Positions 19,329 through 62,614 of a stretch of DNA of 64,000 nt are shown one piece after another (positions within the stretch are counted from its first letter, which is position 1; every line of letters begins with the position of its first letter). Source of the DNA: Bugula neritina (Eukaryota; Animalia; Bryozoa); contig OZ037769.1 in the NCBI GenBank assembly GCA_964035545.1, positions 17,266,633 through 17,330,632 of the forward strand, read 5' to 3'. Position numbers and translations under genes: made by a program. Under the pieces are notes generated by a model, which searched no databases, was not told the origin of the DNA, and saw only the letters and a list, made by a program, of their open reading frames with translations.

Positions 19329-21143
19329 CTACCGGGAGAGACTTCTGTTTGCTTCATTATAAGTGAAATATGCAGCATCCCCGAAGGCAGAGGACCTGGC
19401 GCGGCCGGATCGAGGTTGAGATATGCTCGACATCGGATATATGCTCCGCTGTCTCTTTCTCGCATTCTCCAACTTAACTTTGGTGTAGAACACTGCGCCT
19501 AGGATGAATATCAAGAAGCTGGACAGAATGATGATGACTTTAATCCAGCCACCATACAGCTGGGACCACGACAGCTGCACACCCGGGGTTGAAACGACCT
19601 TCTGCCGAGGTTTGTACGTAATATTGCAGTTCCGCTGCAGAGAGTTTTTAAAAGTGTATAATTTCGTTCTGGAGACACACTCTCCATATTGACACCATCT
19701 ACCATCAAACCCACAGGCCACACCGTTCAAGGCCGGCAGACCCTTTTTAATAGCGCAGTCATCCTTTATCTTTGTATTTGAGCAAAACACACCTTTACAA
19801 AAGCCGATACCCTCGGTGTCAAACTGGCTCCTGGCACAAGCCTTGAAGTGAGCGCCCTCTGTCAGTCTGCAGTAGTCATCAATAGTCACGAGCTGACCTA
19901 ATTGCATGCTCTTATACGCTGCCAAAGACAGGATACTGCTGTTAGCTGGTCTCCGCTGTAAACAGCTCTCTCGCTTCATTATGTAATACATCTGAGCAAG
20001 GCTGCAGCACGAGAAGACAAATGAAAACTCTGGATTATTTTTATTGAATGTTTTTCCCATTAGCATGTCCACAGTTGACCCGCAATCAATAAACAGACCG
20101 TCATGTTCAGACCCAAATATATGGCCCAACTCGTGTATCAGCGTGAAGAACGAGGAATATCCAAATCTCTCCTCGATTACGGCTACCGCAGTGCGACCGC
20201 ATACACTATGCGGAAATGCCCCTCCGATGGTGCGCTGCCCGCTCTTCCCTGCAAGGTCATGTGCCACAAAGGTCACCGATGCTGCAATGTTGTTGTAGTT
20301 AGAGGATACAGATTTAGTTAAGGATATAGCATACTGTGCAGCTTTAGAAATGGGCAATGTTGGCACACCATTCTTCAACTGAACAAATTGATCAAAATAC
20401 GAGCTATTACCATCCTTTGAGATGACCAAGATGTCTACAACAGATACATCTATAGTCATCCCGTCGTGATCAATGTCCAGGAAGAGTTGCTGGTTGGCCG
20501 ACATGACATTCATATAGTAATCTCTTACTTGGTCACACAGATTCTCAGTGTTGATTTCTTGGTGACAGCAAGTGGGCCACTGCCTCTTACAATGTTCTTC
20601 AACCGTGGTGCTGTCAATCATGACCAACACAGGAACATAGAAATCCCGGTGCGAACCACCTCCTTGCTCCGCAATAGACATGTGGGGTGGATAGCGAATA
20701 GATCGATGTCTTCTACTAGACGCATCTTCAACTCGGTCAATGAAATGGCCGTCCACTGTACTTTTGTGCACAGAAGTTTCAGTTATATTACAGAGGTCCT
20801 GCATGCATACTACTTCCAAAATAGAATTCGTGTCTGATACGAAAAAGCCAGTAACCGTTACACCATTGTCACTCTGACGTATCGCAAGGAAAGTGTGACG
20901 ACGATCATCCCGACAATAATGCACTGCGTCCTTCGAACTTCCTTTAGAATAAACGATGGTGCGAATAGTTTCATCTGCATTCACAGCTTCAAAAGTCAGC
21001 AGAAATATCTGAGTCTCACTGTCAGCTACGTTTTTGGATATTCTTTGAAGAAAATACTTGTAGAGAGAGCCGAGTGCCAAGCCATGCTGGATTTGTAACA
21101 ACATTAGAACTGATAACCAACTTCTACCTCCCACAGACTTCAT
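19329..21143 (-). CDS. Intronless M12B (reprolysin) zinc metalloprotease with an ADAMTS-type disintegrin-like domain and a transmembrane anchor
   Basis: Signal peptide MKSVGGRSWLSVLMLLQIQHGLALG; furin-like site RRHR; zinc motif HELGHIFGSEHD with a downstream LM Met-turn; Cys-rich YCRL..NGVACGFDGRWCQYGECV; TM segment WIKVIIILSSFLIFILGAVFY; basic cytoplasmic tail. Confidence 0.88.
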   Translation of the reverse strand: MKSVGGRSWLSVLMLLQIQHGLALGSLYKYFLQRISKNVADSETQIFLLTFEAVNADETIRTIVYSKGSSKDAVHYCRDDRRHTFLAIRQSDNGVTVTGFFVSDTNSILEVVCMQDLCNITETSVHKSTVDGHFIDRVEDASSRRHRSIRYPPHMSIAEQGGGSHRDFYVPVLVMIDSTTVEEHCKRQWPTCCHQEINTENLCDQVRDYYMNVMSANQQLFLDIDHDGMTIDVSVVDILVISKDGNSSYFDQFVQLKNGVPTLPISKAAQYAISLTKSVSSNYNNIAASVTFVAHDLAGKSGQRTIGGAFPHSVCGRTAVAVIEERFGYSSFFTLIHELGHIFGSEHDGLFIDCGSTVDMLMGKTFNKNNPEFSFVFSCCSLAQMYYIMKRESCLQRRPANSSILSLAAYKSMQLGQLVTIDDYCRLTEGAHFKACARSQFDTEGIGFCKGVFCSNTKIKDDCAIKKGLPALNGVACGFDGRWCQYGECVSRTKLYTFKNSLQRNCNITYKPRQKVVSTPGVQLSWSQLYGGWIKVIIILSSFLIFILGAVFYTKVKLENARKRQRSIYPMSSISQPRSGRARSSAFGDAAYFTYNEANRSLSR

Positions 21144-21416
21144 AATCTTATATCCACATAGAATTTCTAAATAGAAGAGTGTTGCAGGGGCGCACTGAAA
21201 TGCGATAGTCAAACCCAACAATGCCCTAATTTATCTGACATTCCTAAAATACCTATTGCACCAACAGTTTTTTGAGATTACATATTTTATTGTACCAACA
21301 GTCTTATGAGATTACTTATTTTCTTAGTCTAGATTTTAAATACCTTCCCCTAACTCTCAACTGGTCAAAACCCTAAGGCTAAGATTGTTTACATGTGCTG
21401 GAGTGAAGGAAAACAA

Positions 21417-39563: not shown

Positions 39564-42500
39564 ATGGGTCAACGTAAATCTGTCCCTCAACCTCCACGTC
39601 AGTCTGTGATAAGTTAGTAAACCATATGAATACAAATACTGCAACTAGTGACTATAACAGAAATTATATAATTTTATGTTCTGAAAATAAGGTGCAGTAG
39701 CAGAGAAACTGAGATAGCCTAAGTTCTTTAAGTTTTCTAACAAATTTTGAGTTAAGGTGCAGGTAAAAATTATCATCAAAACATAACTTCTTTGCTACAT
39801 TTCTGACCTAGAAACACAGGTATTTTTCACTTGTTTCATTATGGTACACCTACCTCTGTTTTGACCACAGCTGAGTATATTACATTGCTTGTGTTTATTA
39901 TATAATGTTATATACTGAGTATAATATATATATAGCTATTATATACTGACTTATATTATACTATTCTATAACTATTAGACTAACCTATGTCATATTATAT
40001 TATATAGTATATTATATTAAATTATATTATAGCCTACTATATGACCAATTATAATATATCATAACGCATGCTGCGTACAATACCAAAGTTAATTACTTCA
40101 ATACTGTATAGAGTGTTGAGACATATACTCTGTTATTTGATATCAATGTTATTATTCATATAGTGGTGAATATTTTGTAGAAAGGTACAAGGTGTGGTTC
40201 AACATATCCAGTATAGATGGAGCTGATTATAAGTGGATGAAGAATGATACTACACACTACACTATAGAAGAGATCAAGAAGAGAACTAGACATCATACAG
40301 TGACTCATGTTACACTGGAGGATGACATCCCTCCAAATATGAACACACTGTTTCCTCATCTCACACACCTGAGTGTAGAAGGAGTAAATAGTAGTGCTGA
40401 CTGGACCAGGTATACTAGTGTTATAATATAAAACTATATATTCAATAAGTGACATATTATCTTGTAGTAGAATGTGGAGTAATCTCCCCTCACAATAACA
40501 CTACCTTTAGTAACAACTGTTGTATTATTTACCTGGTTTATTGTATTTCTATTTATTATTCAATGTAATGTGAGTGAATCTCATTCAAACTAATATGTGA
40601 TAATTATATAGAGTTGAATACTGTCACATACCTGTGTGTTATGTTACAGCATATCTTCGCTGAAGAATCTTGAGGTATTGGATATATCAGATAATTACCT
40701 ATCTGAAGGTCAACCTGACAATATATTCACATCCTTACTATCATTGAGAGAGTTGAACATGAGGAACTGTGGACTACCAACTCTACCAAACAGGTGTGTA
40801 TTATATTATAGTGTAGAATGGTACTGCAATAATCATAAGTTATAAATATACTATAAATAGGTAGGAGTTGTATAGTATTTTTTGATATACAATATTTCAC
40901 ACCTGCATAATATGCTACAGCATATCTTCACTGAAGAATCTTGAGGTATTGGATATATCGTGGAGTAAGCTATCTGAAGGTCTACCTGACAATATATTCA
41001 CATCCTTACTATCATTGAGAAAGTTGAACATGAGTTACTGTAACCTACCAACTCTACCAAACAGGTGTGTATTATATTATATTGTATAATGGTACTGCAA
41101 TAAGCATAAGTTATAAATATATTATAGATATGATTAGGTAGAGGTTGTATGGTATTTTTAATATACAGCATTTCACACCTGTATGTTATGTTACAGCATA
41201 TCTTCACTGAAGAATCTTGAGGTATTGGATATATCAGATAATAACCTATATGAAGGTCTACCTGACAATATATTCACATCCTTACTATCATTGAGAGAGT
41301 TGGACATGAGTTACTGTAACCTACCAACTCTACCAAACAGGTGTGTATTATATTATATTGTATAATGGTACTGCAATAAGCATAAGTTATAAATATATTA
41401 TAGATATGATTAGGTAGAGGTTGTATGGTATTTTTAATATACAGCATTTCACACCTGTATGTTATGTTACAGCATATCTTCACTGAAGAATCTTGAGGTA
41501 TTGGATATATCAGATAATAACCTATATGAAGGTCTACCTGACAATTTATTCACATCCTTACTATCATTGAGAGAGTTGAACATGAGGGACTGTAAACTAC
41601 CAACTCTACCAAACAGGTGTGTATTATATTATAGTGTAGAATGGTACTGTAATAAGTATAAATTATAAATATAATATAGATATGATTAGGTAGAAGTGTA
41701 TGGTATTTTTTGATATACAACATTTTACACCTGTGTGTTATGTTACAGCATATCTTCACTGAAGAATCTTGAGGTATTGTATATATCAGTGAATAACCTA
41801 TCTGAAGGTCTACCTGACAATATATTCACATCCTTACTATCATTGAGAGAGTTGAACATGAGTCACTGTGAACTACCAACTCTACCAAACAGGTGTGTAT
41901 TAAATTATAGTGTAGAATGGTACTGCAATAATCATAAGTTATAAATATACTATAAATAGGTAGGAGTTGTATAGTATTTTTTGATATACAATATTTCACA
42001 CCTGCGTAATATGCTACAGCATATCTTCACTGAAGAATCTTGAGGTATTGTATATATCATGGAATAAGCTATCTGAAGGTCTACCTGACAATATATTCAC
42101 ATCCTTACTATCATTGAGAGAGTTGTACATGAGTTGGTGTAAACTACCAACTCTACCAAACAGGTGTGTATTATATTATACATTATGAAGTTGTCTGCAC
42201 TATCTTTATTGAGTCAACTAGACTCTGTGTATACGACACGTCATAAGACAACTACTCTATTCAATCAGATATACTCAGATAGATATGGTATGACAACTTC
42301 TCACTTATTACTCTAATAAATTTATTGACAAATAAATTGTTTTGCTACAAAATGAAAGTATATTGAGACTTAGCTGAGAGTTGTATATTGTAACTTGTAT
42401 AATTTTTAAGGAAGTTAATGAATAGAAGACAACTAACAAAATATTCATTTTTAGCTGTACTTAATTATGAAACTCTCACTGATTTATTATACTGAGATAT

Positions 42501-45500
42501 ATTATAATGTTATACTGAGATATAATAGTATACTATACTGAGATATATTATAATACTATACTGAGATATATTATAATATTATACTGAGATATATTATATT
42601 ACTATACTGAGATATATTATAATACTATACTGAGATATATTATAATATTATACTGAGATATATTATAATATTATACTGAGATATATTATAATATTATACT
42701 GAGATATATTATAATGCTATACTGAGATATATTATAATATTATACTGAGATATATTACAATATTATACTGAGAAATATTATAATACTATACTGAGATATA
42801 TATAATGTTATACTGAGATATATTGTAATGTTATACTAAGATATATTACAATATTATACTGAGATATATTATAATACTATACTGAGATATAATATAATGT
42901 TATACTGAGATATAATATAATACTATACTGAGATATATTATAATGTTATACTGAGATATATTGTAATGTTATACTAAGATATATTACAATATTATACTGA
43001 GATATATTATAATACTATACTGAGATATATTATAGTGTTATACTGAGATATATTATAATATTATACTGAGATATAATATAATATTATACTGAGATATATT
43101 ATAATATTATACTGAGATATATTATAATATTATACTGAGATATATTATAATATTATACTGAGATATATTATAATATTATACTGAGATATATTATAATGTT
43201 ATACTGAGATATATTATAATATTATACTGAGATATATTATAATGTTATACTGAGATATATTATAATACTATACTGAGTTATATTATAATGTTATGCTGAG
43301 ATATTATATAATTTATCTGTATGATATAATATATGTTAAAGCATATCTTCACTGAAGAATCTTGAGGTATTGGATATATCAATGAATAACCTATCTGAAG
43401 GTCTACCTGAAAATATATTCACATCCTTACTATCATTGAGAAGGTTGAACATGGCGGGCTGTGAACTACCAACTCTACCAAACAGGTGTGTATTATATTA
43501 TACATTACGAAGTTGTCTGCACTATCTTTATTGAGTCAACTAGACTCTGTGTATACGACACGTCATAATAAGACAACTACTCTATTCTATCAGATATACT
43601 CAGATAGAAATGGTATGACAACTTCTCGCATATTATTCTAAAAAATTCATTGACAATTAAATTGTTTTGCTACAAAATGAACTCTATTGAGACTTATCTG
43701 AGAGTTGTATATTGTAACGTGTAATTTTTAGAGAAGCTAATGAATATCGAAGACAACTAACAAAATATTCATTTTTAATTATGAAACTCTCACAGATTTA
43801 TTATACTGAGATATATTATAATATTATACTGAGATATATTATAATATTATACTGCGACATATATTATAATATTATACTGAGATATATTATAATATTATAC
43901 TGAGATATATTATAATATTATACTGAGATATATTATAATATTATACTGAGATATATTATAATGTTATACTGAGATATATTACAATGTTATACTGAGATAT
44001 ATTATAATGTTATACTGAGATATATTATAATATTATACTGAGATATATTATAATATTATACTGCGACATATATTATAATATTATACTGAGATATATTATA
44101 ATATTATACTGAGATATATTATAATACTATACTGAGATATATTATAATACTATACTGAGATATATTATAATGTTATACTGAGATATATTATAATATTATA
44201 CTGAGATATATTATAATATTATACTGAGATATAATATAATATTCTACTGAGATATATTATAATATTATACTGAGATATATTATAATGCTATACTGAGATA
44301 TATTATAATATTATACTGAGATATATTACAATATTATACTGAGAAATATTATAATACTATACTGAGATATATATAATGTTATACTGAGATATATTGTAAT
44401 GTTATACTAAGATATATTACAATATTATACTGAGATATATTATAATACTATACTGAGATATAATATAATGTTATACTGAGATATAATATAATACTATACT
44501 GAGATATATTATAATGTTATACTGAGATATATTGTAATGTTATACTAAGATATATTACAATATTATACTGAGATATATTATAATACTATACTGAGATATA
44601 TTATAGTGTTATACTGAGATATATTATAATATTATACTGAGATATAATATAATATTATACTGAGATATATTATAATATTATACTGAGATATATTATAATA
44701 TTATACTGAGATATATTATAATATTATACTGAGATATATTATAGTGTTATACTGAAATATATTATAATATTATACTGAGATATAATATAATATTATACTG
44801 AGATATATTATAATATTATACTGAGATATATTATAATATTATACTGAGATATATTATAATATTATACTGAGATATATTATAATATTATACTGAGATATAT
44901 TATAATGTTATACTGAGATATATTATAATATTATACTGAGATATATTATAATGTTATACTGAGATATATTATAATACTATACTGAGATATATTATAATGT
45001 TATACTGAGATATAATATAATATTATACTGAGATATATTATAATGTTATACTGAGATATATTATAATACTATACTGAGTTATATTATAATGTTATGCTGA
45101 GATATTATATAATTTATCTGTATGATATAATATATGTTATAGCATATCTTCACTGAAGAATCTTGAGGTATTGAATATATCATATAATAACCTATCTGAA
45201 GGTCTACCTGAAAATATATTCACATCCTTACTATCATTGAGAAGGTTGAACATGGCGGGCTGTGAACTACCAACTCTACCAAACAGGTGTGTATTATATT
45301 ATACATTACGAAGTTGTCTGCACTATCTTTATTGAGTCAACTAGACTCTGTGTATACGACACGTCATAATAAGACAACTACTCTATTCTATCAGATGTAC
45401 TCAGATAGAAATGGTATGACAACTTCTCGCATATTATTCTAAAAAATTCATTGACAATTAAATTGTTTTGCTACAAAATGAACTCTATTGAGACTTATCT

Positions 45501-48500
45501 GAGAGTTGTATATTGTAACGTGTAATTTTTAGAGAAGCTAATGAATATCGAAGACAACTAACAAAATATTCATTTTTAATTATGAAACTCTCACAGATTT
45601 ATTATACTGAGATATATTATAATATTATACTGAGATATATTATAATATTATACTGCGACATATATTATAATATTATACTGAGATATATTATAATATTATA
45701 CTGAGATATATTATAATATTATACTGAGATATATTATAATATTATACTGAGATATATTATAATGTTATACTGAGATATATTACAATGTTATACTGAGATA
45801 TATTATAATATTATACTGAGATATATTATAATACTATACTGAGATATATTATAATACTATACTGAGATATATTATAATGTTATACTGAGATATATTATAA
45901 TATTATACTGAGATATATTATAATATTATACTGAGATATAATATAATATTATACTGAGATATATTATAATATTATACTGAGATATATTATAATGCTATAC
46001 TGAGATATATTATAATATTATACTGAGATATATTACAATATTATACTGAGAAATATTATAATACTATACTGAGATATATATAATGTTATACTGAGATATA
46101 TTGTAATGTTATACTAAGATATATTACAATATTATACTGAGATATATTATAATACTATACTGAGATATAATATAATGTTATACTGAGATATAATATAATA
46201 CTATACTGAGATATATTATAATGTTATACTGAGATATATTGTAATGTTATACTAAGATATATTACAATATTATACTGAGATATATTATAATACTATACTG
46301 AGATATATTATAGTGTTATACTGAGATATATTATAATATTATACTGAGATATAATATAATATTATACTGAGATATATTATAATATTATACTGAGATATAT
46401 TATAATATTATACTGAGATATATTATAATATTATACTGAGATATATTATAGTGTTATACTGAGATATATTATAATATTATACTGAGATATAATATAATAT
46501 TATACTGAGATATATTATAATATTATACTGAGATATATTATAATATTATACTGAGATATATTATAATATTATACTGAGATATATTATAATATTATACTGA
46601 GATATATTATAATGTTATACTGAGATATATTATAATATTATACTGAGATATATTATAATGTTATACTGAGATATATTATAATACTATACTGAGATATATT
46701 ATAATGTTATACTGAGATATAATATAATATTATACTGAGATATATTATAATGTTATACTGAGATATATTATAATACTATACTGAGTTATATTATAATGTT
46801 ATGCTGAGATATTATATAATTTATCTGTATGATATAATATATGTTATAGCATATCTTCACTGAAGAATCTTGAGGTATTGAATATATCATATAATAACCT
46901 ATCTGAAGGTCTACCTGACAATATATTCACATCCTTACTATCATTGAGAGAGTTGTACATGGAGAGATGTAAACTACCAACTCTACCAAACAGGTGTGTA
47001 TTATATTATACATTATGAAGTTGTCTGCACTATCTTTATTGAGTCAACTAGACTCTGTGTATACGACAAGTCATAATACAACTACTCTATTCTATCAGAT
47101 ATACTCAGATAGAAATGGTATGACAACTTCTCACTTATTGCTCTAATAAATTTATTGATAATTAGATTGTTTTGCTACGAAATGAAATCTATTGAGACTT
47201 AGCTGAGAGTTGTATATTGTAACGTGTAATTTTTAGAGAAGTTGATGAATAGAAGACAACTAACAAAATTATCATTTTCAGCTGTAATTGTGAAATTCTT
47301 ACTGATTGTTACACTGAGTTATAATATAGAAATTATACTGAGATATATTATAATATTTACTGAGATATATTATAATATTATACTGAGATATAATGTAATG
47401 TTATACTGAGATATATTATAATGTTATACTGAGATATATTATAATATTATACTGAGATATATTATAATATTATACTGAGATATATTATAATATTATACTG
47501 AGATATAATATAATACTATACTGAGATATAATGGTAGTCAATCAACTGTTACCTAGTGATGCATTGTATCATTTACCTGCTCTTTTGCATCAAATAACTG
47601 GGAGGATAACTCCTAAAATATCTATAAATTTTATACAATACTTTGCACAATCTTACATATATGTATTATAATTATTAATTGTATTATGGAACTCCAATGT
47701 TTATTTTTGTGCAAACCCCATTTTTGTAACCTCAAATATATTATTTTATTTTTATTAGCATGCAGAGTCTACAGAAGTTAGAGAAACTGAACATATCAAG
47801 GAACAAGTCCACCAGTTTACCATCTATTGTGTACACACTGAGCAGTCTGCAAGAACTGAATATATGTAATAATAAATCCCTGACATCATTAGATCCTGAG
47901 ATACTACAGCTAACTCAACTTCATACACTGGAGGTCTGGGGTTGTGATGCTCTCACATCTCCTCCACTAGAAGTATGTAAGAGAGGACTAGATGCTCTGA
48001 GACAATACTACACAGACTTGGCTAAAGGTGCTGGTAAAAGTCTACCATTTGCTACTGTAGCTGTGCTGGGTAATACGATGGCCGGGAAGACCAGTCTAAT
48101 CAGAACATTACAGAGTGCTGACAGAAAGAGAGTTCTGACCAACAGAGGGCCAGATGCTGTGAGAGATGAGACAACAAAGGTGTTTAATGTTGAAGAGGTG
48201 GAGGTGGATGGTACAGTACTCCGTGTCATTGATATGGGAGGCCAGGAGGTCTACCATATCACCTATCAACTGACACTGAGACAGAACTGTATTCCAGTCA
48301 TAGTAGTCAACATGGAGCAGTATGATAAGATTTCAAGTGAATCAACCCACAGAGAAGCTGTTAGAAGATTAGCCTTTGATTACATGTCCCACCTCTACCT
48401 GGCTAACCCAACTCTGGGTCCACCAAAACTTATCTTCACCCATGAAGATAAGTTTCAACGTACGGAATTTCAGAAGCTTCGAAAAACCTTTCTAGAAACT

Positions 48501-51500
48501 TCCAATCAACTGTGTGAGGAGATGATTAGAGAAGAGAAAGCGTTGGGTGGAGAATTTGCTCGAATCAAATATTTCAGTGAATCAACTGATGGCGTCTTTC
48601 TTGGTGAGGACATTTTTGAGCTGGGAAAGGATGACAAGTATGAAGTGTTTGACCTGATCAAAGAGTCTCTTCTTCAAAGCAGTCAAAATTTTGTGAAACC
48701 TTTACCTCTGGTCTGGGAGGAAGTGAATGAAAAAGTTCTGTCTATTCCCTCTGTGTACAGCACCTTTGATGAGACACTGAAATACATACAAACAGAACTT
48801 CAACACATTGAGTCAAGTCAGCTGGACATAATCCTCACATACATGCATGACTGCGGCAAAGTCTTGTGGTATAAAGATATCAGCTCTCTCCGGCCATACG
48901 TATTCCACAAGATTTCAGAAGTCACCAAACTCCTCTGTGTCTTGTATCATCATGATCCTAAGATCTGGCAGAGTAGAGTTGACCAGTTCCAGCCATACTA
49001 TTCGCAGACTGAACTACGTGTCGAAAAGCAGGACTTTGAGAAATCCGTCAATGATTTCACTGACACTGGTTTGATGATGCCGTCCCTTCTTTTTTATTTC
49101 GTTGAAAAAGAGACATCATTCAGTAGCTCTAAGGACGTTGAAGTTGCCGTCTGCTTACTCCAGACGTTTCGTTTGCTGCACGGTCCAATACATAGCGAGT
49201 CTGAAGAGCCATGGTTCATTGTACCTCAGTTTGCTAAAAACTACTACAGCACCTCCTATTCCTCACCCAAAGACATACGTCTTCAGGTGGAGACACAGTT
49301 CAATGGTCTAGCCCTGCCACAATATGTCTACCACCAGATGACGGTCGGTTTGTTGGAATCGTTCCCAGATGAGTTTGCTGTGATGGAAGTGAAGAGAAAC
49401 GGAGCCAATGTCTATCAAGATGAAATCCACACACAGCTGGTACATGATTGCAAATCTAGAAAAGTGTCACTTCACGTGTCATCCAATGCTGCCAACATCA
49501 GCAAAGTGTGGGAGAGACTCATCACCACCAACAACAACATCCTTAGACATGTTCTAGAAACCTGGACAGCAAGTAGAGCAGTCACTACATGCTACTGTGC
49601 TCACTGCCTTCTGCTAGGACTTCCTTGTCCTAAGAAAGTACTCCATCCTCCATGGTGTCTTCGCTCCTTGAAACATCCCACACCAAATCCCAGACTGTGT
49701 AGTGGATCTTCAACAACTCTGTGTGGCAGTGAGGAGATACCGAGTGCTTTTCTCTATCCATGTATGTTTGGTTACATTATGGTGCAGTGTGTGTAATAAC
49801 TTTTATTTCTTTCTAATTTACCACATTATTTAGATATGAACTGAGTCAATCCTCCCCATTCCTTGGTATAATTGGGGTAAGAAAAATATAGTGAGTTGGA
49901 ATTATTTATTATATTTTTAAGTATTTCAACTTTTCAGGTGAAACATTGTCTAAGAAAGAAGCTGATAAGTTGGAGAAGTTTGGGAAGGAACTGAATCTTC
50001 GAGGAGCTCAAAGAAGAGTAACTAATTCTGGTAAACACGGAGTTACCAGTTTGTGCAAGCGTGTGTTCTTTTTATGTTAATCAAGTTCAACTTGAGCCGT
50101 GAATGATTCTACTGCGTTTTATTTCATACCATGTCAACAGTTTCTTAGGAATGTGTATCATTTAAAAATTGAACTTTATTTTGCAAGTTAATGAAAGCGT
50201 TTAACTTTACATGGTGAAGCAATGAACGTATATTACTGAGTTACAGCTCAGTACTACTTTGCCGATCTTTGTATTTCTTACTTATTCTGTGATGTGATAT
50301 GAGTCTGTACTTTATAGCTGCTAACAGTAGCCAATCAGATCTCCTGACCTCCGCGATAACAGCCAATGACGATCTCAGTGATCTCTCTGATGACGATGAG
50401 AATCTGTACCCTGATAGAGAGGAAGTTGAAAATATGAAGTTTATAAGACTCAGACTGAATCCCACCAGTAACCCAAAGATAAGACAGCTGTTCTCAAACA
50501 CTGACAAGGTGATCACTTCTAATGGCTATGTCCTTTATTCTTGCCAGTTGTTTAGTTCAGCAGTGACACGTATTTCTCTGTTACATTCAGGTGTTTACTA
50601 TGACTAGAAAAAGAGGAAGAGCTCTGATAATAAACAACATGAACTTTGAGAAGAGACCAGATTTGTGTAGGACAGGTTCAGATGTGGATGTAGAGAATTT
50701 GTCTGCCCTGTTGAAAACTCTCAAGTTTGATGTTGTGACACACGCAGACCTGAAAGCTGAGGTACGTTTTGTTGCTGTTTACTTATCAAGTTAAAAACCT
50801 ACTTCTCTGTTAGTATACAATATCTATATTTATACAGAATACGTTGCAAGGGTTTACAGGTCTTACAGTTTTCATGGACTTTAAATAAAAATTCAATTTA
50901 ACATAAGACTTCCTCCTTCCCAATTTCATTATTTTACTTCCTGTTGTAGGAGATGCTGTCTGCTGTGAAATCTGAGGTGAAAAAAGAGGAACACGAAGAT
51001 CTGGGATGTCATGTGTTGGTTATCATGACTCATGGAGGGCTGAACAACCACATCTTGGGTACAGACCTGAAACGAGTCAAATTAACAGATGTGTATGACC
51101 TTCTGACCCCTTTGAACTTCCCTGGAATGGCTGGCAAACCAAAGGTTGTTATACTGGAAGTCTGTAGTGGAGGTAATCAATTTATAAAACATTTCTGGTC
51201 AGTGCAGAGTTGTGTTCTCTTGAATGTTAAGTATTTGGTAGAGTGTGTTAACTTACAACTAATTTCACAATTATGTAGAATAATTCTTACATATTTAACC
51301 TTGTTTGTGTTCATTATATGAAGTGAATATAAATGTTTTTATATCGCTCACAGAGAGAAGTGACTATGGCCAAAGAGGTATAGACAGATTTGATATCGGA
51401 GAATCACAGAAGGAGGGGGAGAGTATCTCACCTCCACTTGCTAAAGTTCCAGGAGACAAAAATGCTGAGGCTATGAATAGACTGAACTATGATGACCTGC

Positions 51501-56971: not shown

Positions 56972-57903
56972 ATGGAGACTGAAGATGCTGGAACGCAACC
57001 ACAGCCGGTAGAAGGTGAGCGTAGAGATGATGTTATTCCTGTGAATCGTGTTGTAGAAGAGCGAAGAGTTCCTCGGGAACTGAACGAAGACCTCTGCCGG
57101 TTAAAGGCACCCACCTTCACTGGCGAAGGCGAAGTGGAACAATTCATTCAAGAGTTTAGCGACGTGATGGACGTTGCCCAGTAGCCACCTAGGGTGGCCC
57201 TGCTGAAGCTCAGAATGTCATTGATGGATAAGGCCAAGCCCTATGGGTTAGGGGCAGACATCGATAGTATCTTTGCTTCTCCACGAGCCCGCTTCGGCAT
57301 CTCTGCCATAGATGCCCGGGCTTGTCTACAAAGGCTGCGGCGTGATCCCACACCCCGCTACAGGAACATGCCACCACGATGATGAAGCTGGCGCAGATTG
57401 CGTATAGCGATCTGCCTCAAGCTAACCGTGAGAGGTGCACCTTTGACGCCTTTGTGCAATCTGTCAACGACTTGGGACTCCACCATCAATTTCTAGCTAG
57501 GGGAGTTACCACAGTCGAAGACGCTCTGGCGGAAGGAGAAGCTTATCTTCTGGCAAACCAGATGCATAGAAATCGCGGGAACTCCCACCAGGTGGAGATA
57601 GAGCCCACGGACACGGCAGCCGATCGGGAGGCAGAGCCCTCCGCGACCGCTGTCGTGGGACAGTTAACTGCCGCATCGAAGGTCGCCCAACTGACTGACA
57701 TGTTGGCTAAACTGGTAGCAGCACTGACACATCAAACCCCAGTAGGTACCGTCTATGAGCCTCCGCAGCCACCGGGGGAAACAGTCAGTTTTTGCTGGGA
57801 ATGTGGAAACCAAGGACATTTCCGCAGATACTGGCCTCTCCTTGCTCCGGGGTTAAACTACCGTGGCCCGCAGATGTTCCCGCCTCCTGCGGGCCGACGA
57901 TGA
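56972..57903 (+). pseudogene. gag: Gypsy gag, disrupted
   Basis: APTFTGEGEVEQFIQEF and a degenerate zinc knuckle CWECGNQGHFRRYW; in-frame stop near 57182 and a frameshift near 57355. Confidence 0.85.
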
Positions 57904-58159
57904 ATCCCCCAGGGAAGAGGAAACGTAGGTCACTCAGACGGGTACTGCGTGCTAACAACCAGAAGGGGCGACAGCCACGGCAAACAGGTAAGGGGCTCCG
58001 CCCCGCTGTTACCTTCTCTATGCCACTCCACAACCGATTCAACGGGCCCAAGAATCAGAAAGGGAACCAATACAGGCAACTGGAAACTTACCCTCCCTAT
58101 CTCCGAGGACACCCTACCACCGTCCCAAACGACCACCCTCGCGACCTAAAGCGAGGGAG

Positions 58160-61100
58160 GTGCTCCCTGCGAGAGTAAGGCACGAAGAGAGAGTACAGGT
58201 ACAGCCTCATGGGAACAGCTATTTCTTACCCGGCAAAATAAAGGGTAAAGCTGTTACTTTCCTGCTTGATTTGGGCTGTACCACGAACCTCATAAGTCGC
58301 CAACTCTTCGATACCCTCAGCACTAGGGTCAGGGGCGAGATGGAACCGTACGAGGGAGAGTATGGCACCCTGGCTGACGGGTCGTGCATTCCCTTCTATG
58401 GTATAATTAAGCTGACCGGACGCGTCTGAGATCAAACGATCCAAGAGACGTTTATCGTTAGTCAGCTCAAAGAGGACGCCATCCTCGGGATGCCATTCCT
58501 GAAACGGCACGGATGTCACATTGACTTCAGTAAGTCTGCAATGGTGATGTCCGGGCGAGAACTCACCTGTGTCGACAAGTTCTGTCGCCCCTTAGTGGGA
58601 GGCGTGCAGGTGGTACGAAACTGTACTGTACCAGGCCGCTCCCGAGCTACTATCCACTGTAGAGTGAACAATAACCAGATCTCTGGACTCGGAGTAGTTG
58701 AAAGCGTGCACGAAAGAATCCAACTCGCCAGCAGTTTGAACCAACTGACTGCGCGAGGAGAGATCTTAGTGCAGTGCGTAAACCCTTTTACCGAGTCCAT
58801 TAAGCTACCAGCTGGATCTATGCTGGGCCGGTTCCACTCTGTCCAAGAGGAGGATGTGGGCCCGTCGCTGGGAGACGCAACAGAAGAGCACCCTCGACGC
58901 CCTCAGAAGGGGCGGGGGACTGTCCCAACACACATCAGGGAGTTATACGAGACAGCTTGTGGTGGCTGTGCAAGCAACGAGGAACGCCAGGCTATGGCGA
59001 AGTTGCTACGCGACTACGGTGATGTGTTCAGCAGCGGAGATCACGACGTGGGACTGACTGGAGCTGTCAGACACGAGATACCGCTGACTGCAGGGACAGT
59101 CCCTATTCGGCAACCCACCCGCAGGTTGGGGCCGGAGAAGGAGAAGGAGGTCAGCTGACAAATCCGGGATCTTCTGGACTGCGGCTTTATCGAGCCAGCC
59201 CACAGTGCGTGGAGCTCGCCGGTCGTGTTGGTCTGGAAGAAAGACGGAAGTTGGCGGTTCTGTGTGGACTACCGCAAGCTCAATAGCGTGACCATACAGG
59301 ACGCCTACCCTCTACTTCGTATTGATGAATCACTGGACGCCCTAGCCGGCAGCAAGTACTTCAGTACATTAGACTTGTTGAGGGGTTACTGGCAGGTTCC
59401 TCTGAGTCCCGACGCCTAGGAGAAGGCGGCGTTTAACACACGGTACGGACTGTGGAAGTGGAAGGTGCTGCCCTTCGAGTTAAGCTCCGCACCGGCCACC
59501 TTTCAGAGGCTGATGGAGCAAGTCCTCAGCGGACTCCACTGGAAAACACTGCTGATCTACCTCGATGACGTCATCGTGATCTCCCTGGACTTCGAGACAC
59601 ACGTCAGCCGTCTGCGGGAGGTTTTCAAAAGACTCAGAGGTGCCGGTCTGAAGCTCAAACCTTCCAAGTGTGCTCTTTTGCAGCTGGAGATCAAGTACCT
59701 GGGGCACGTTGTCGGTCGAAACGGCGTGGCAACGGATCCCGAAAAGGTGCGGGCGATAGAGGACTGGGTCACTCCCCAAGATTTGACCGGACTCCGGGCT
59801 TTCTTGGGTCTGGTGGGGTATTACAGGCAATACATACCAGACTTTGCGGGGATAGAACAGCCGTTAAACCGGCTCACCGCAAAGGGAGTGACGTGGCAGT
59901 GGACCCCGGTCGTACAACGGGCGTTCGACCGCCTCAAGGGTTGTCTACTTACGGCACCCATCTTGGCCTACCTAGACCCCACTCTGGAGTACATCCTTGA
60001 CACAGACGCTAGTGACCAGAATGTTGGCGCTGTGCTGTCTCAAGTGCAGGAAGGCCGAGAAGTAGTGGTAGCGTACTAAAGCAAGTCTCTCTCACCCACT
60101 GAACGAAATTACTGCACTACCCGCAAGGAGTTGCTGGCAGTAATCAAGTCAGTGAAGCACTTCAGACCACACCTGTATGGCAGGAACTTCCGGCTGCGTA
60201 CGGATCATGCCTCTCTGATTTGGTTGTGCAAGAAAGCTGAGCCGTCCAGTCAGGTCGCCCGGTGGCTCGAAATCCTAGCTGAGTTCTCCTACCGGATCGA
60301 ACACTGGCCGGGTAAGAGGCACAGGAATGCGGATGGGTTGAGCCAGCGACGTGATGGAGGTTGTAAACAGTGTCTCAACATTGAGAGGAGGGATGGAGGT
60401 CCCCCACGATGTGAGTTAGAGACACTGGCTCACCACGGAGCACAGTTTGACTGGGACCAGGGTCAACTCCAGCAGACGGTTGACGAGTCCCCGGAGGTTG
60501 TACTAAACCTTCGCGCCAACCCTGTTTTGGCCGATAATGTCCAGGAGCTGAAGAATCTTCAGGAAGAGCTGCCTGGAGTAGTGGCAGACATATATCGGGC
60601 CAAAAAGGAAAGGCGACGACCCAGCGAGGAACAACTGCGGCAGGGATGCGCCGAGTTCCGGCTATTCTGCCAACGTTGGGACTCGCTGAGGATTGGGCCA
60701 GATGGTCTGCTGACCATTTCTTTGGCCGCCAACGGCAGACACCCGGAGAGGAAGAAAGTGGTCTGCCCCACTGCCATACGCCGTGAGTTAATTTGGGACA
60801 CTCATAAACAGGCTCACGCAGGAGTCAAGAGAGTGATCTCCAAATTGCAACTCCGGTGGTATTGGCCCAAGATGGGGCGTGATGTCCGACTCAGAGTCAA
60901 ACAGTGTAAAATCTGCCAGGCCAGCAAGCATGTCCGTCTCCCTGGTGAAGCGGGACGGCGAAGGTTATATGCTGAAAGGCCGTGGCAAGTAGTAACTGTC
61001 GACCTGGTCGGACCCATGCCCCTAACCCCCAGAGGCAATAGTTGGATCTTAGCATTAACCGACCACTTTACGAGGTGGGCGGATGCTCCGGCGATCCCAG

Positions 61101-61981
61101 ATGCGTCAGCTCCGACAGTGGCCAGGGTGCTAGACCAACATGTATTCTGTCACTTTGGCCTCTTCGAACAGATACACTTTGACCAAGGCGTCCAGTTCCA
61201 GTCTCAACTGATGAGCGACCTTTGTCGCCTCTGGGGAGTAAATCAGAGCAGGACCACTCCTTACCATCCCCAAGGCAACGAGGTGGTGGAGCGCAATAAC
61301 CGGATGCTAAGTGATGCGCTCCGGAGTCTACTCCTCGGACACAGTCAGGAGGAATGGGACACGGTGTTGCAGCAAGTCATGCGCGCATACCGTAGCACCC
61401 CACACACCAGTACTGGTGAGACCCCAAACCTCCTGATGCTCGGGAGGGAGACTCGTGTCCCAGACCATCTTACCTACCACATTCCAGAACAAGACAACTC
61501 AGTTCACGAGTATGCCAGTGAACTAGTGGAACGGATGAAGGTCGCACACGAAATGCTGCGAGAGAAGCAGTGGCAGGTGCGGCGCGAAGATTCCGAGAAA
61601 CCACCTCTCTATCAGACAGGAGATTGGGTGTGGATGGTCAATTACCGTAGGCATTGCGGACAGGCGGCTAAGTTACAGCCTAAGTTCGTGGGACCCTACG
61701 TGATAGTCGAGGCTATGCCCAACCATACCTACAAGATCGAGCGCTCAGGACAAGTGTCCATCCCAAATGAGGCTCGCTTGAAGCCGTATTGGGCTAGCCC
61801 AGACGCAGTGAGAGAAGCCCCCCCCCATTGTTGGAACCCAGGAGGCAGACGACAATGCGTGGGCGACGGCGGCATGGATCCGAGTATGAAGTGGTCATTC
61901 CGCAGGAAGAAGATTTGGTACGAGACGAGCGACCGCTTCTACCCACAGAAGTGCGTCCGCCGCCTCCTATACCAAGTCTGA
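58160..61981 (+). pseudogene. pol: Gypsy pol (protease-RT-RNase H-integrase), multiple stops
   Basis: FLLDLGCTT (protease); WRFCVDYRKLN and YLDDVIV (RT); DTDASD and RTDHASL (RNase H); HxxxHxG..CKIC, DLVGP, TTPYHPQGN and GPY (integrase). Stops at about 58427, 59156, 59417 and 60077. Confidence 0.93.
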
Positions 61982-62614
61982 TGCCATCACTTCCAGAAAC
62001 CGAACCGGTTCCGAAAGTGCAAACCCTCACGGAGGGAGGGGCTCCATCCAGAGAACAGGAAAAAGTAACCACTACCGGTGAATTAGAAGCGCCACCAGAG
62101 GCCCCTACTAGCCGGTGAGTGCGCCACCTCCCCTAGAGTGGGGACAACGTACGAGGCAACCCCCATCATATTCAAAAGATTTCGTATGTGACTGCATGCA
62201 AAGCGGCGCGTATGAAAGTCTAGAGGGGAACCATACGAGAAAAGTATCGAGCAATTGTAGGAATTGTCAGCACCACGGGAATATCAACTTTTGCATCGGC
62301 GGATTTAGAAATAAAATTCATTCGCCGAGTGTGCAAAGTCCTAGTCACGCACCCCAACCATGTTGCTCGATCTTTTCTCACGCTGATGCAGTCAAGAGCA
62401 GACGTGCTTCTAGTCACTAGTACAAACCATTCACAAACATTCAGTACGTCATACAATACCGGATCGTGGGGTGAGTTAGCTATGTTCCTGATATGGAAAC
62501 TAGATTGCATCACTCAGCTCTGACTCGACTGAGTCAATCGAGCTGGAGATAGGCTAGTGAACTGTAGTGGTAGGAACTCAGATTGACTTAGAGATTTCAC
62601 GATCTCACTGCAGT

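Follow-up and report, generated by a model that had tools for sequence, protein, structure and literature searches.

Introduction

In the fungus Podospora anserina, the het-E gene has been seen directly to gain a WD40 repeat in which the 5' end of repeat 3 is followed by the 3' end of repeat 2; in HNWD/het-E/het-R, shuffling of parental pairs of hypervariable codons gives rise to new combinations (PMC2873952). Here we describe a locus of the bryozoan Bugula neritina that resembles this system. The window that we analyzed is a 64,000-nucleotide stretch of genome assembly GCA_964035545.1 (contig OZ037769.1, called C5 below; C5:17266633-17330632), and positions are counted from its first nucleotide. 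It holds a tandem array of nine cassette exons, E1 to E9, that encode leucine-rich repeats (LRRs). Two of them, E8 and E3, are mosaics of their neighbors. We consider it likely that these two exons record two tandem duplications, one of about 1.8 kb and one of 276 bp, that arose recently in the germline by unequal homologous recombination.

The Podospora HNWD proteins are STAND NTPases. Like them, the product of the bryozoan locus appears to be an NTPase-type receptor with a recognition arm of tandem, highly conserved repeats, and in both cases each repeat carries two small groups of hypervariable codons under positive selection. Unequal crossover within a Podospora repeat adds a unit with its 5' end from one parent and its 3' end from the other, which is exactly the pattern of E3 and E8. 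However, Podospora is a fungus, its repeats are WD40 repeats rather than LRRs, and they are contiguous in one exon. Its rearrangements have been seen experimentally at a measurable frequency, and repeat-induced point (RIP) mutagenesis acts on them too.

The LRR-ROCO genes of brown algae (Ectocarpus and kelps) are similar in other respects (PMC3341825, PMC11378527). They encode LRR-Roc(-COR) proteins with 24-residue LRRs on phase-2 cassette exons that begin at the same point of the LRR consensus as the Bugula exons, and cassette number varies. Recent duplicates have recombined in the LRR region, and the variable residues are under diversifying selection. However, the algal exon is 72 bp long and holds one LRR, whereas the B. 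neritina exon is 144 bp long and holds two. Whole exons were treated as the shuffled unit in the algae, with no mapped breakpoints, whereas switches at the bryozoan loci often fall inside the exon, between its two LRRs. The algal genes also have intronic and inverted noncoding cassettes and no caspase domain, whereas the bryozoan cassettes of an array share one orientation. There has been speculation about somatic recombination in the algal genes, which is still unconfirmed (PMC3341825, PMC11378527).

Two further systems share some of these features. Plant NLR and receptor-like resistance clusters, such as banana RGA08 (PMC3017797), undergo unequal recombination and conversion between LRR paralogues, with chimeric genes, copy-number change, and diversifying selection on exposed LRR residues. 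However, the LRRs of a plant gene are usually encoded by a single exon and resemble each other much less, and the exchanges are mostly between genes, not between adjacent exons of one gene. The lamprey VLR system (PMC3308329) also forms hybrid LRR modules. Short homologies within the LRR-coding sequence guide the joins, and a single mature module can be a patchwork of several cassettes. It differs in having an incomplete germline gene, unspliced donor cassettes in either orientation, and somatic, lymphocyte-specific assembly. In our literature search, we found no paper describing a bryozoan ROCO or LRR cassette family.

Results

The cassette array

The window is AT-rich (36% G+C), contains many minisatellites and no N, and belongs to a 216-Mb assembly of 321 contigs. 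E1 to E9 span 40650-46993, all on the plus strand, as are the introns, switch intervals, and duplication copies described below. Each unit is exactly 144 bp long, is preceded by AG and followed by GT, and has a single open frame. The introns are in phase 2, and the first base of each cassette exon completes an AG|C serine codon. The exons were translated singly, and Pfam was run on these single-exon translations. Each exon encodes two 24-residue LRRs; the E1 translation matched Pfam LRR_1, LRR_4, and LRR_8. Introns 1 to 5 are 127 or 132 bp long, and introns 6, 7, and 8 are 1178, 1657, and 1563 bp long, respectively.

E8 combines the 5' half of E9 with the 3' half of E7

To trace parentage, the hybrid exons were aligned with both neighbors and 300-bp flanks, and the informative events were sorted by parent. 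The boundaries of repeated segments were taken from in-register run counts and a two-parent scan. E8 (45143-45286) lies between E7 (43342-43485; DISMNN ... PEN ... RRLNMAGCE) and E9 (46850-46993; NISYNN ... ELYMERCK). Compared with E9, it has one difference among the 72 columns of the 5' half (column 70) and seven in the 3' half. Compared with E7, it has four differences in the 5' half and none in the 3' half. Ten informative events, from -266 to column 43, match E9, and the following 35, from column 70 to +463, match E7. The split is without exception (45/45). By chance it has a probability of 2/C(45,10) = 6e-10, and it was reached in none of 200,000 shuffles. This bears out a preliminary description of this DNA, in which E8 was read as the 5' half of E9 plus the 3' half of E7. 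Over columns 1-69, E8 is identical to E9, and over columns 44-144 it is identical to E7. The crossover interval is the overlap, columns 44-69 (45186-45211), which are the same in E7, E8, and E9.

The repeated segment reaches well beyond the exon. Copy 1 of the putative tandem duplication of about 1.8 kb (43385-45211) begins at column 44 of E7, takes in intron 7, and ends at column 69 of E8. Copy 2 (45186-46918) begins at column 44 of E8, takes in intron 8, and ends at column 69 of E9. The two copies differ by three substitutions and one 94-bp length change in a 23-bp minisatellite (exact runs at offsets 1801 and 1707). These differences are also all that separates introns 7 and 8, whose near-identity had been noted before. 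Divergence since the event is 0.17% over a unit of about 1.8 kb. E8 and the start of intron 8 are 99% identical to the E7 unit, compared with 91% for the E9 unit and 89% for the E6 unit. The E8 junction signature, a 43-mer, occurs once in the 216-Mb assembly.

The near-identity run between E7 and E8 covers one full period plus 26 bp, and both of its ends fall in columns 44-69. Such coincident ends are what one unequal exchange between misaligned E7 and E9 predicts; it would have added a unit of about 1.8 kb, with E8 as the junction exon. Another possible explanation is out-of-register gene conversion, in which a tract of about one unit is copied from the following unit. It would replace the 3' half of an exon, the intron behind it, and the 5' half of the exon after that, and would turn an existing E3 or E8 into an apparent hybrid while cassette number stayed unchanged. 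At E8, such a tract would have to end in the same 26-bp window by chance, which is expected in about 26/1750 cases (about 1.5%). The coincident ends therefore argue against conversion at this exon.

The 23-bp minisatellite arrays that fill introns 6, 7, and 8 form one row of Tandem Repeats Finder output (42485-46848, no strand), which is interrupted by E7, E8, and unique intron sequence. Individual arrays lie at 42485-43320, 43800-45100, 45600-46810, and 47309-47530 (introns 6 to 9). The two copies of the duplication are already 94 bp, or about four minisatellite units, apart in length. This suggests that the arrays shift in length faster than point substitutions build up.

E3 is a mosaic of E4 and E2

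E3 (41197-41340) lies between E2 (40921-41064; W-S-K ... MSYCN) and E4 (41473-41616; DNNLYEG ... MRDCK). Its 5' half is identical to that of E4 at 72/72 columns. Its 3' half resembles that of E2, and both exons end in MSYCN, but columns 101 and 107 differ. The earlier description of E3 was correct for the E4-like 5' half and the shared ending, but over the whole 3' half the match to E2 is imperfect. Among 49 informative events, 26 match E4 and 23 match E2, and 48 of the 49 fit one switch. Introns 2 (41065-41196) and 3 (41341-41472), each of 132 bp, are identical at 132/132 positions, as they had appeared to be in that description. An exact 242-bp run, 41028-41269, recurs at +276. The E3 junction signature (a 59-mer) also occurs once in the assembly. 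In terms of a duplication, the unit is 276 bp and there is zero divergence outside the junction.

The switch interval of E3 covers columns 55-114 (41251-41310) and is patchy inside. Columns 1-73 equal E4, and columns 108-144 equal E2. At column 74, E4 has a private base and E3 is like E2. The base at column 101 is private to E2 among E2, E3, and E4, and is carried also by E7 and E8. Column 107 is private to E3. All three differences are nonsynonymous (I/L, E/K, and N/D). Their clustering at the junction may reflect patchy mismatch repair, selection, or chance.

These details bear on conversion in both directions. The 242-bp run is shorter than the 276-bp period; therefore, conversion without gain of a unit explains E3 about as well as duplication does. 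Columns 74, 101, and 107 would lie outside the converted tract, and no extra mutation would be needed. On the other hand, both tract ends would have to fall within the same 34 of 276 bp, which would happen in about 12% of cases by chance.

Trees of the two exon halves are incongruent

Maximum-likelihood trees were built separately for the left side of each unit (upstream intron plus columns 1-56) and for the right side (columns 89-144 plus downstream intron). In the left tree, E8 is identical to E9 and E3 is identical to E4. In the right tree, E7 is identical to E8, and E2 and E3 group together with 96/97 support. The two trees are thus incongruent, in line with the recombination of LRR halves that the preliminary description had proposed. 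Correlations of all-pairs distances between introns and exon halves were weak and uninformative. Convergent mutation as a source of the shared motifs was rejected, because whole flanking introns have the same parentage as the exon halves.

We conclude that the sequence evidence supports E8, and probably E3, as junction products of misaligned homologous exchange that carry a new pairing of LRR binding-face motifs.

A possible older exchange between E1-E2 and E5-E6

A third repeat connects the blocks E1-E2 and E5-E6. The distance from E1 (40650-40793) to E2 and that from E5 (41749-41892) to E6 (42020-42163; W-N-K) are both 271 bp, and E2 and E6 share a W-x-K motif. Introns 1 (40794-40920) and 5 (41893-42019), each of 127 bp, are near-identical, with 125/127 matches compared with 109 to 120 for other short-intron pairs. 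They include an exact 102-bp run at an offset of 1099. These results bear out the recurrence of spacing, intron type, and W-x-K exon that had been reported.

The repeated block ends inside exons on both sides, within the E5 switch at columns 64-109 and within columns 44-117 of E2 and E6. On its left, E5 resembles a cassette of the same contig at a distance of 2.7 Mb, and on its right it resembles E1. E2 resembles E6 on the left and E3 on the right, with its switch at columns 55-117. E6 resembles E2 on the left, whereas its right part and intron resemble E9. Because the copies are four units apart, the block looks like an older ectopic exchange and not a simple adjacent duplication. Its distance and its ends inside exons resemble ectopic conversion, which speaks for conversion as a process in the array.

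The introns of the two blocks differ at 2/127 positions and the adjoining exon halves at 3/72 each. The faster divergence of the exon halves fits a ratio of nonsynonymous to synonymous changes (pN/pS) above 1 at hypervariable codons.

Sister cassettes recur across the genome

We surveyed 19 genomic segments with 84 cassettes, which are part of the family and not the whole of it. Eighty-three cassettes are 144 bp long and one is 132 bp long, and AG|GT is present in 84/84. The 132-bp cassette, at C3:4517744 (locus L029/L034), has an in-frame shortening of 12 bp and keeps AG|GT. Within each surveyed array, all cassettes lie on the same strand, and there were no inverted or unspliceable donor cassettes. 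Arrays hold at least 1 to 9 cassettes, some being cut at a segment edge. Thus, cassette number demonstrably varies in the family, which counts against a process that leaves it unchanged. Overall, we consider out-of-register conversion an unlikely explanation of the two exons, although at E3 taken singly it fits about as well as a duplication.

Variation between cassettes is concentrated at residues 11, 14, and 16 (HV1) and at residues 36, 38, 39, and 41 (HV2). These hypervariable groups are x positions of the LxLxxNxL motif in the first and second LRR, respectively, and lie on the predicted binding strand. The stretch of about 57 bp between them is largely conserved. At the hypervariable codons, pN/pS is 1.8 in the 83 full-length cassettes and 2.6 in the nine window cassettes; at framework codons it is 0.74 family-wide.

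We then asked where mosaic cassettes switch parent, using a two-parent, position-unbiased scan of 83 cassettes with 110-bp flanks. The scan returned 15 robust mosaics, which conservative clustering reduced to 11 events. In 7/11 the switch lies between HV1 and HV2, compared with 29% expected by length (binomial p = 0.017). Three of the 11 lie between HV2 and the start of the downstream intron or its donor, and one lies in the upstream intron. Clean additional mosaics were found at C1:34299639 (columns 44-77), C1:34858212 (columns 44-54), and C1:34351520 (columns 68-78). The enrichment of switches in the exon core is suggestive rather than established. The preliminary description had placed in this core the crossovers that create new motif pairings; this holds for E8 and probably for E3, but the core is not the only site. 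In 74% of cassette pairs, the longest perfectly identical tract is in the exon core (median, 39 bp). This offers a plain reason why ectopic exchange would be resolved there when introns have diverged.

The mosaic at C1:34299639 belongs to one of two recent segmental copies on contig C1. The copies lie 67 kb apart, at C1:34228931-34233706 (L011, L024, L027, and L038) and C1:34295951-34301214 (L010, L025, L026, L028, and L040), and have 8 and 9 cassettes, respectively. The first four or five cassettes of one copy can be paired with those of the other, with 94 to 100% identity over exon and flanks. The last three or four, including the mosaic exon, are rearranged.

The cassettes are exons of a putative LRR-Roc-caspase gene

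Downstream of E9, a 678-codon exon (47759-49796, plus strand) encodes further LRRs and a Roc GTPase domain. Its phase-2 acceptor at 47759 keeps the LRR register. Pfam Roc was matched at 4e-7 (30.7 bits; cut-off, 27), along with LRR_4 and LRR_8. There was no match to Pfam COR at E <= 0.01 on this 678-residue exon; in brown algae, too, standard scans fail to pick up the COR domain (PMC11378527). A stretch coding for a caspase domain (Peptidase_C14; Pfam 1.2e-9) follows at 50953-51321, also on the plus strand. Judged from sequence, the best explanation is that a single LRR-Roc-(COR)-caspase gene, a candidate sensor, includes E1 to E9 as ordinary exons that are spliced together.

This architecture bears on the idea of programmed or somatic diversification, VLR-like or of the kind speculated about for brown algae, in which the germline chimeras would be by-products. 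Circumstantially, the cassette organization, the hypervariable binding-face codons, and the recombination within cassettes are consistent with it, and a colonial animal could propagate somatic variants. However, nothing is missing from the germline gene, and each cassette is bounded by canonical splice sites. In place of an incomplete VLR-type gene, there are nine open AG|GT cassettes in one phase that are joined in frame to the Roc exon. The single orientation of each surveyed array and the lack of inverted or unspliceable donors are further points against it, and among the 84 cassettes only two or three unit duplications are very recent. Variant junctions were not seen in the short contigs examined, although these could not have revealed them. 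In brown algae, the same idea has stayed unconfirmed after more than a decade (PMC11378527). We therefore regard such a system as extremely improbable here. The preliminary description had suggested a germline, and possibly also somatic, diversification mechanism; a dedicated or somatic one is not supported, as each cassette is an ordinary AG/GT exon and the gene is complete.

We also looked at sequencing run X7, which is labeled metagenomic RNA-Seq, comes from a symbiont metagenome study, and may be RNA. Over 40300-42500, its depth lies on the cassette exons, with little or none in the introns. Its contigs join the end of one cassette to the start of another, and their mismatches point to paralogues. 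This is evidence of splicing at the level of the family and is not assignable to the window gene.

Assembly of the junctions

A mis-assembly would explain the mosaics if haplotypes, or collapsed or expanded repeats, had been laid in tandem, so that E3 or E8 was absent from the animal. The duplications are very young (0% and 0.17% divergence), the DNA is repeat-rich, and the available contigs are too short to support the junctions, all of which would suit such an artifact. However, the window is free of N and is embedded in a contig of 17.7 Mb, and the assembly contains no second haplotype copy of the locus. The repeat boundaries fall at homologous positions of two paralogous exons, which recombination predicts and a linearized heterozygous bubble does not. 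Moreover, the 1.8-kb copies differ at 3 sites over 1.2 kb, and the duplicated span reaches past these sites to differences between E7 and E9. Equivalent mosaics exist at other loci. On these structural grounds, mis-assembly of E3 or E8 is unlikely, and we give an artifact of this kind very little credence overall.

Searches elsewhere gave no further information on the junctions. The Roc exon had no match in the independent assemblies searched. The E8 signature was absent from metagenome contigs of the JGI, but the control, the invariant family core, was absent too, so this blank is uninformative.

Other features of the window

A G+C-richer stretch at about 57380-62000 (plus strand) has long open reading frames (ORFs), with a gag-like zinc knuckle and, by eye, protease, reverse transcriptase, and integrase. 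From the ORF list only, it looks like a Ty3/gypsy-type long-terminal-repeat retrotransposon. On the minus strand, one ORF of 630 codons (19329-21221), apparently intronless, encodes a reprolysin (M12B) metalloprotease domain and an ADAMTS cysteine-rich domain.

Discussion

We propose a simple route to the mosaic exons. In the germline, neighboring cassettes would occasionally pair out of register and recombine, by unequal crossover or by sister-chromatid exchange. When the exchange was resolved in the conserved stretch between HV1 and HV2, the array would gain one unit, and the junction exon would join HV1 of the downstream parent to HV2 of the upstream parent. In this way, E8 would derive from E7 and E9, and E3 from E2 and E4. 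That the events were crossovers and took place in the germline is our inference from the structure of the array, and the new motif combinations may matter for binding. The preliminary description proposed that a crossover duplicates a unit. This agrees with E8, whereas E3 fits conversion about as well, and the E1-E2 and E5-E6 blocks are no simple adjacent duplication.

Several observations weigh against unequal crossover as the origin of the two exons. At E3, the identical run ends 34 bp short of the 276-bp period, and the differences at columns 74, 101, and 107 are packed into those 34 bp; a crossover there needs patchy heteroduplex repair plus one later mutation. At E8, identical tracts of 124 bp were present in the flanking intron tails, as against 26 bp in the exon window; therefore, homology length alone fails to explain the crossover site. 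The enrichment of switches in the exon core is based on only 11 events, as delimited by our own clustering. Neither junction is confirmed by independent reads, since the Logan contigs on 40300-42500 are only 60 to 130 bp long and fit many family members. Finally, copy number at the locus is read from a single haplotype of one assembly. Unequal recombination nevertheless remains the explanation that we favor for E8 and E3.

It is conceivable, though in our judgment highly improbable, that the stretch between HV1 and HV2 is kept invariant partly as a recombination substrate, and that the exchange rate is high enough to differ between colonies or zooids. Individuals would then have specific, or somatically varying, LRR-Roc-caspase repertoires.

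The array adds one more case of a known evolutionary process, in a family of animal receptors about which little is known, and is not a new mechanism or diversification system. It provides base-pair-resolved animal examples of a candidate sensor built of repeats that gains repeats and re-pairs its binding-face motifs. Experiments have demonstrated the same route in fungal NLR-like receptors, and it has been inferred for the resistance genes of plants and the ROCO genes of brown algae. Here, the effective unit of shuffling appears to be the single LRR, although each exon holds two. Since the two events are very young (0% and 0.17% divergence), cassette number may serve as a practical marker of whether colonies differ. 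Asking this would be the first step toward testing whether the LRR-Roc-caspase family has a role in allorecognition or immunity.

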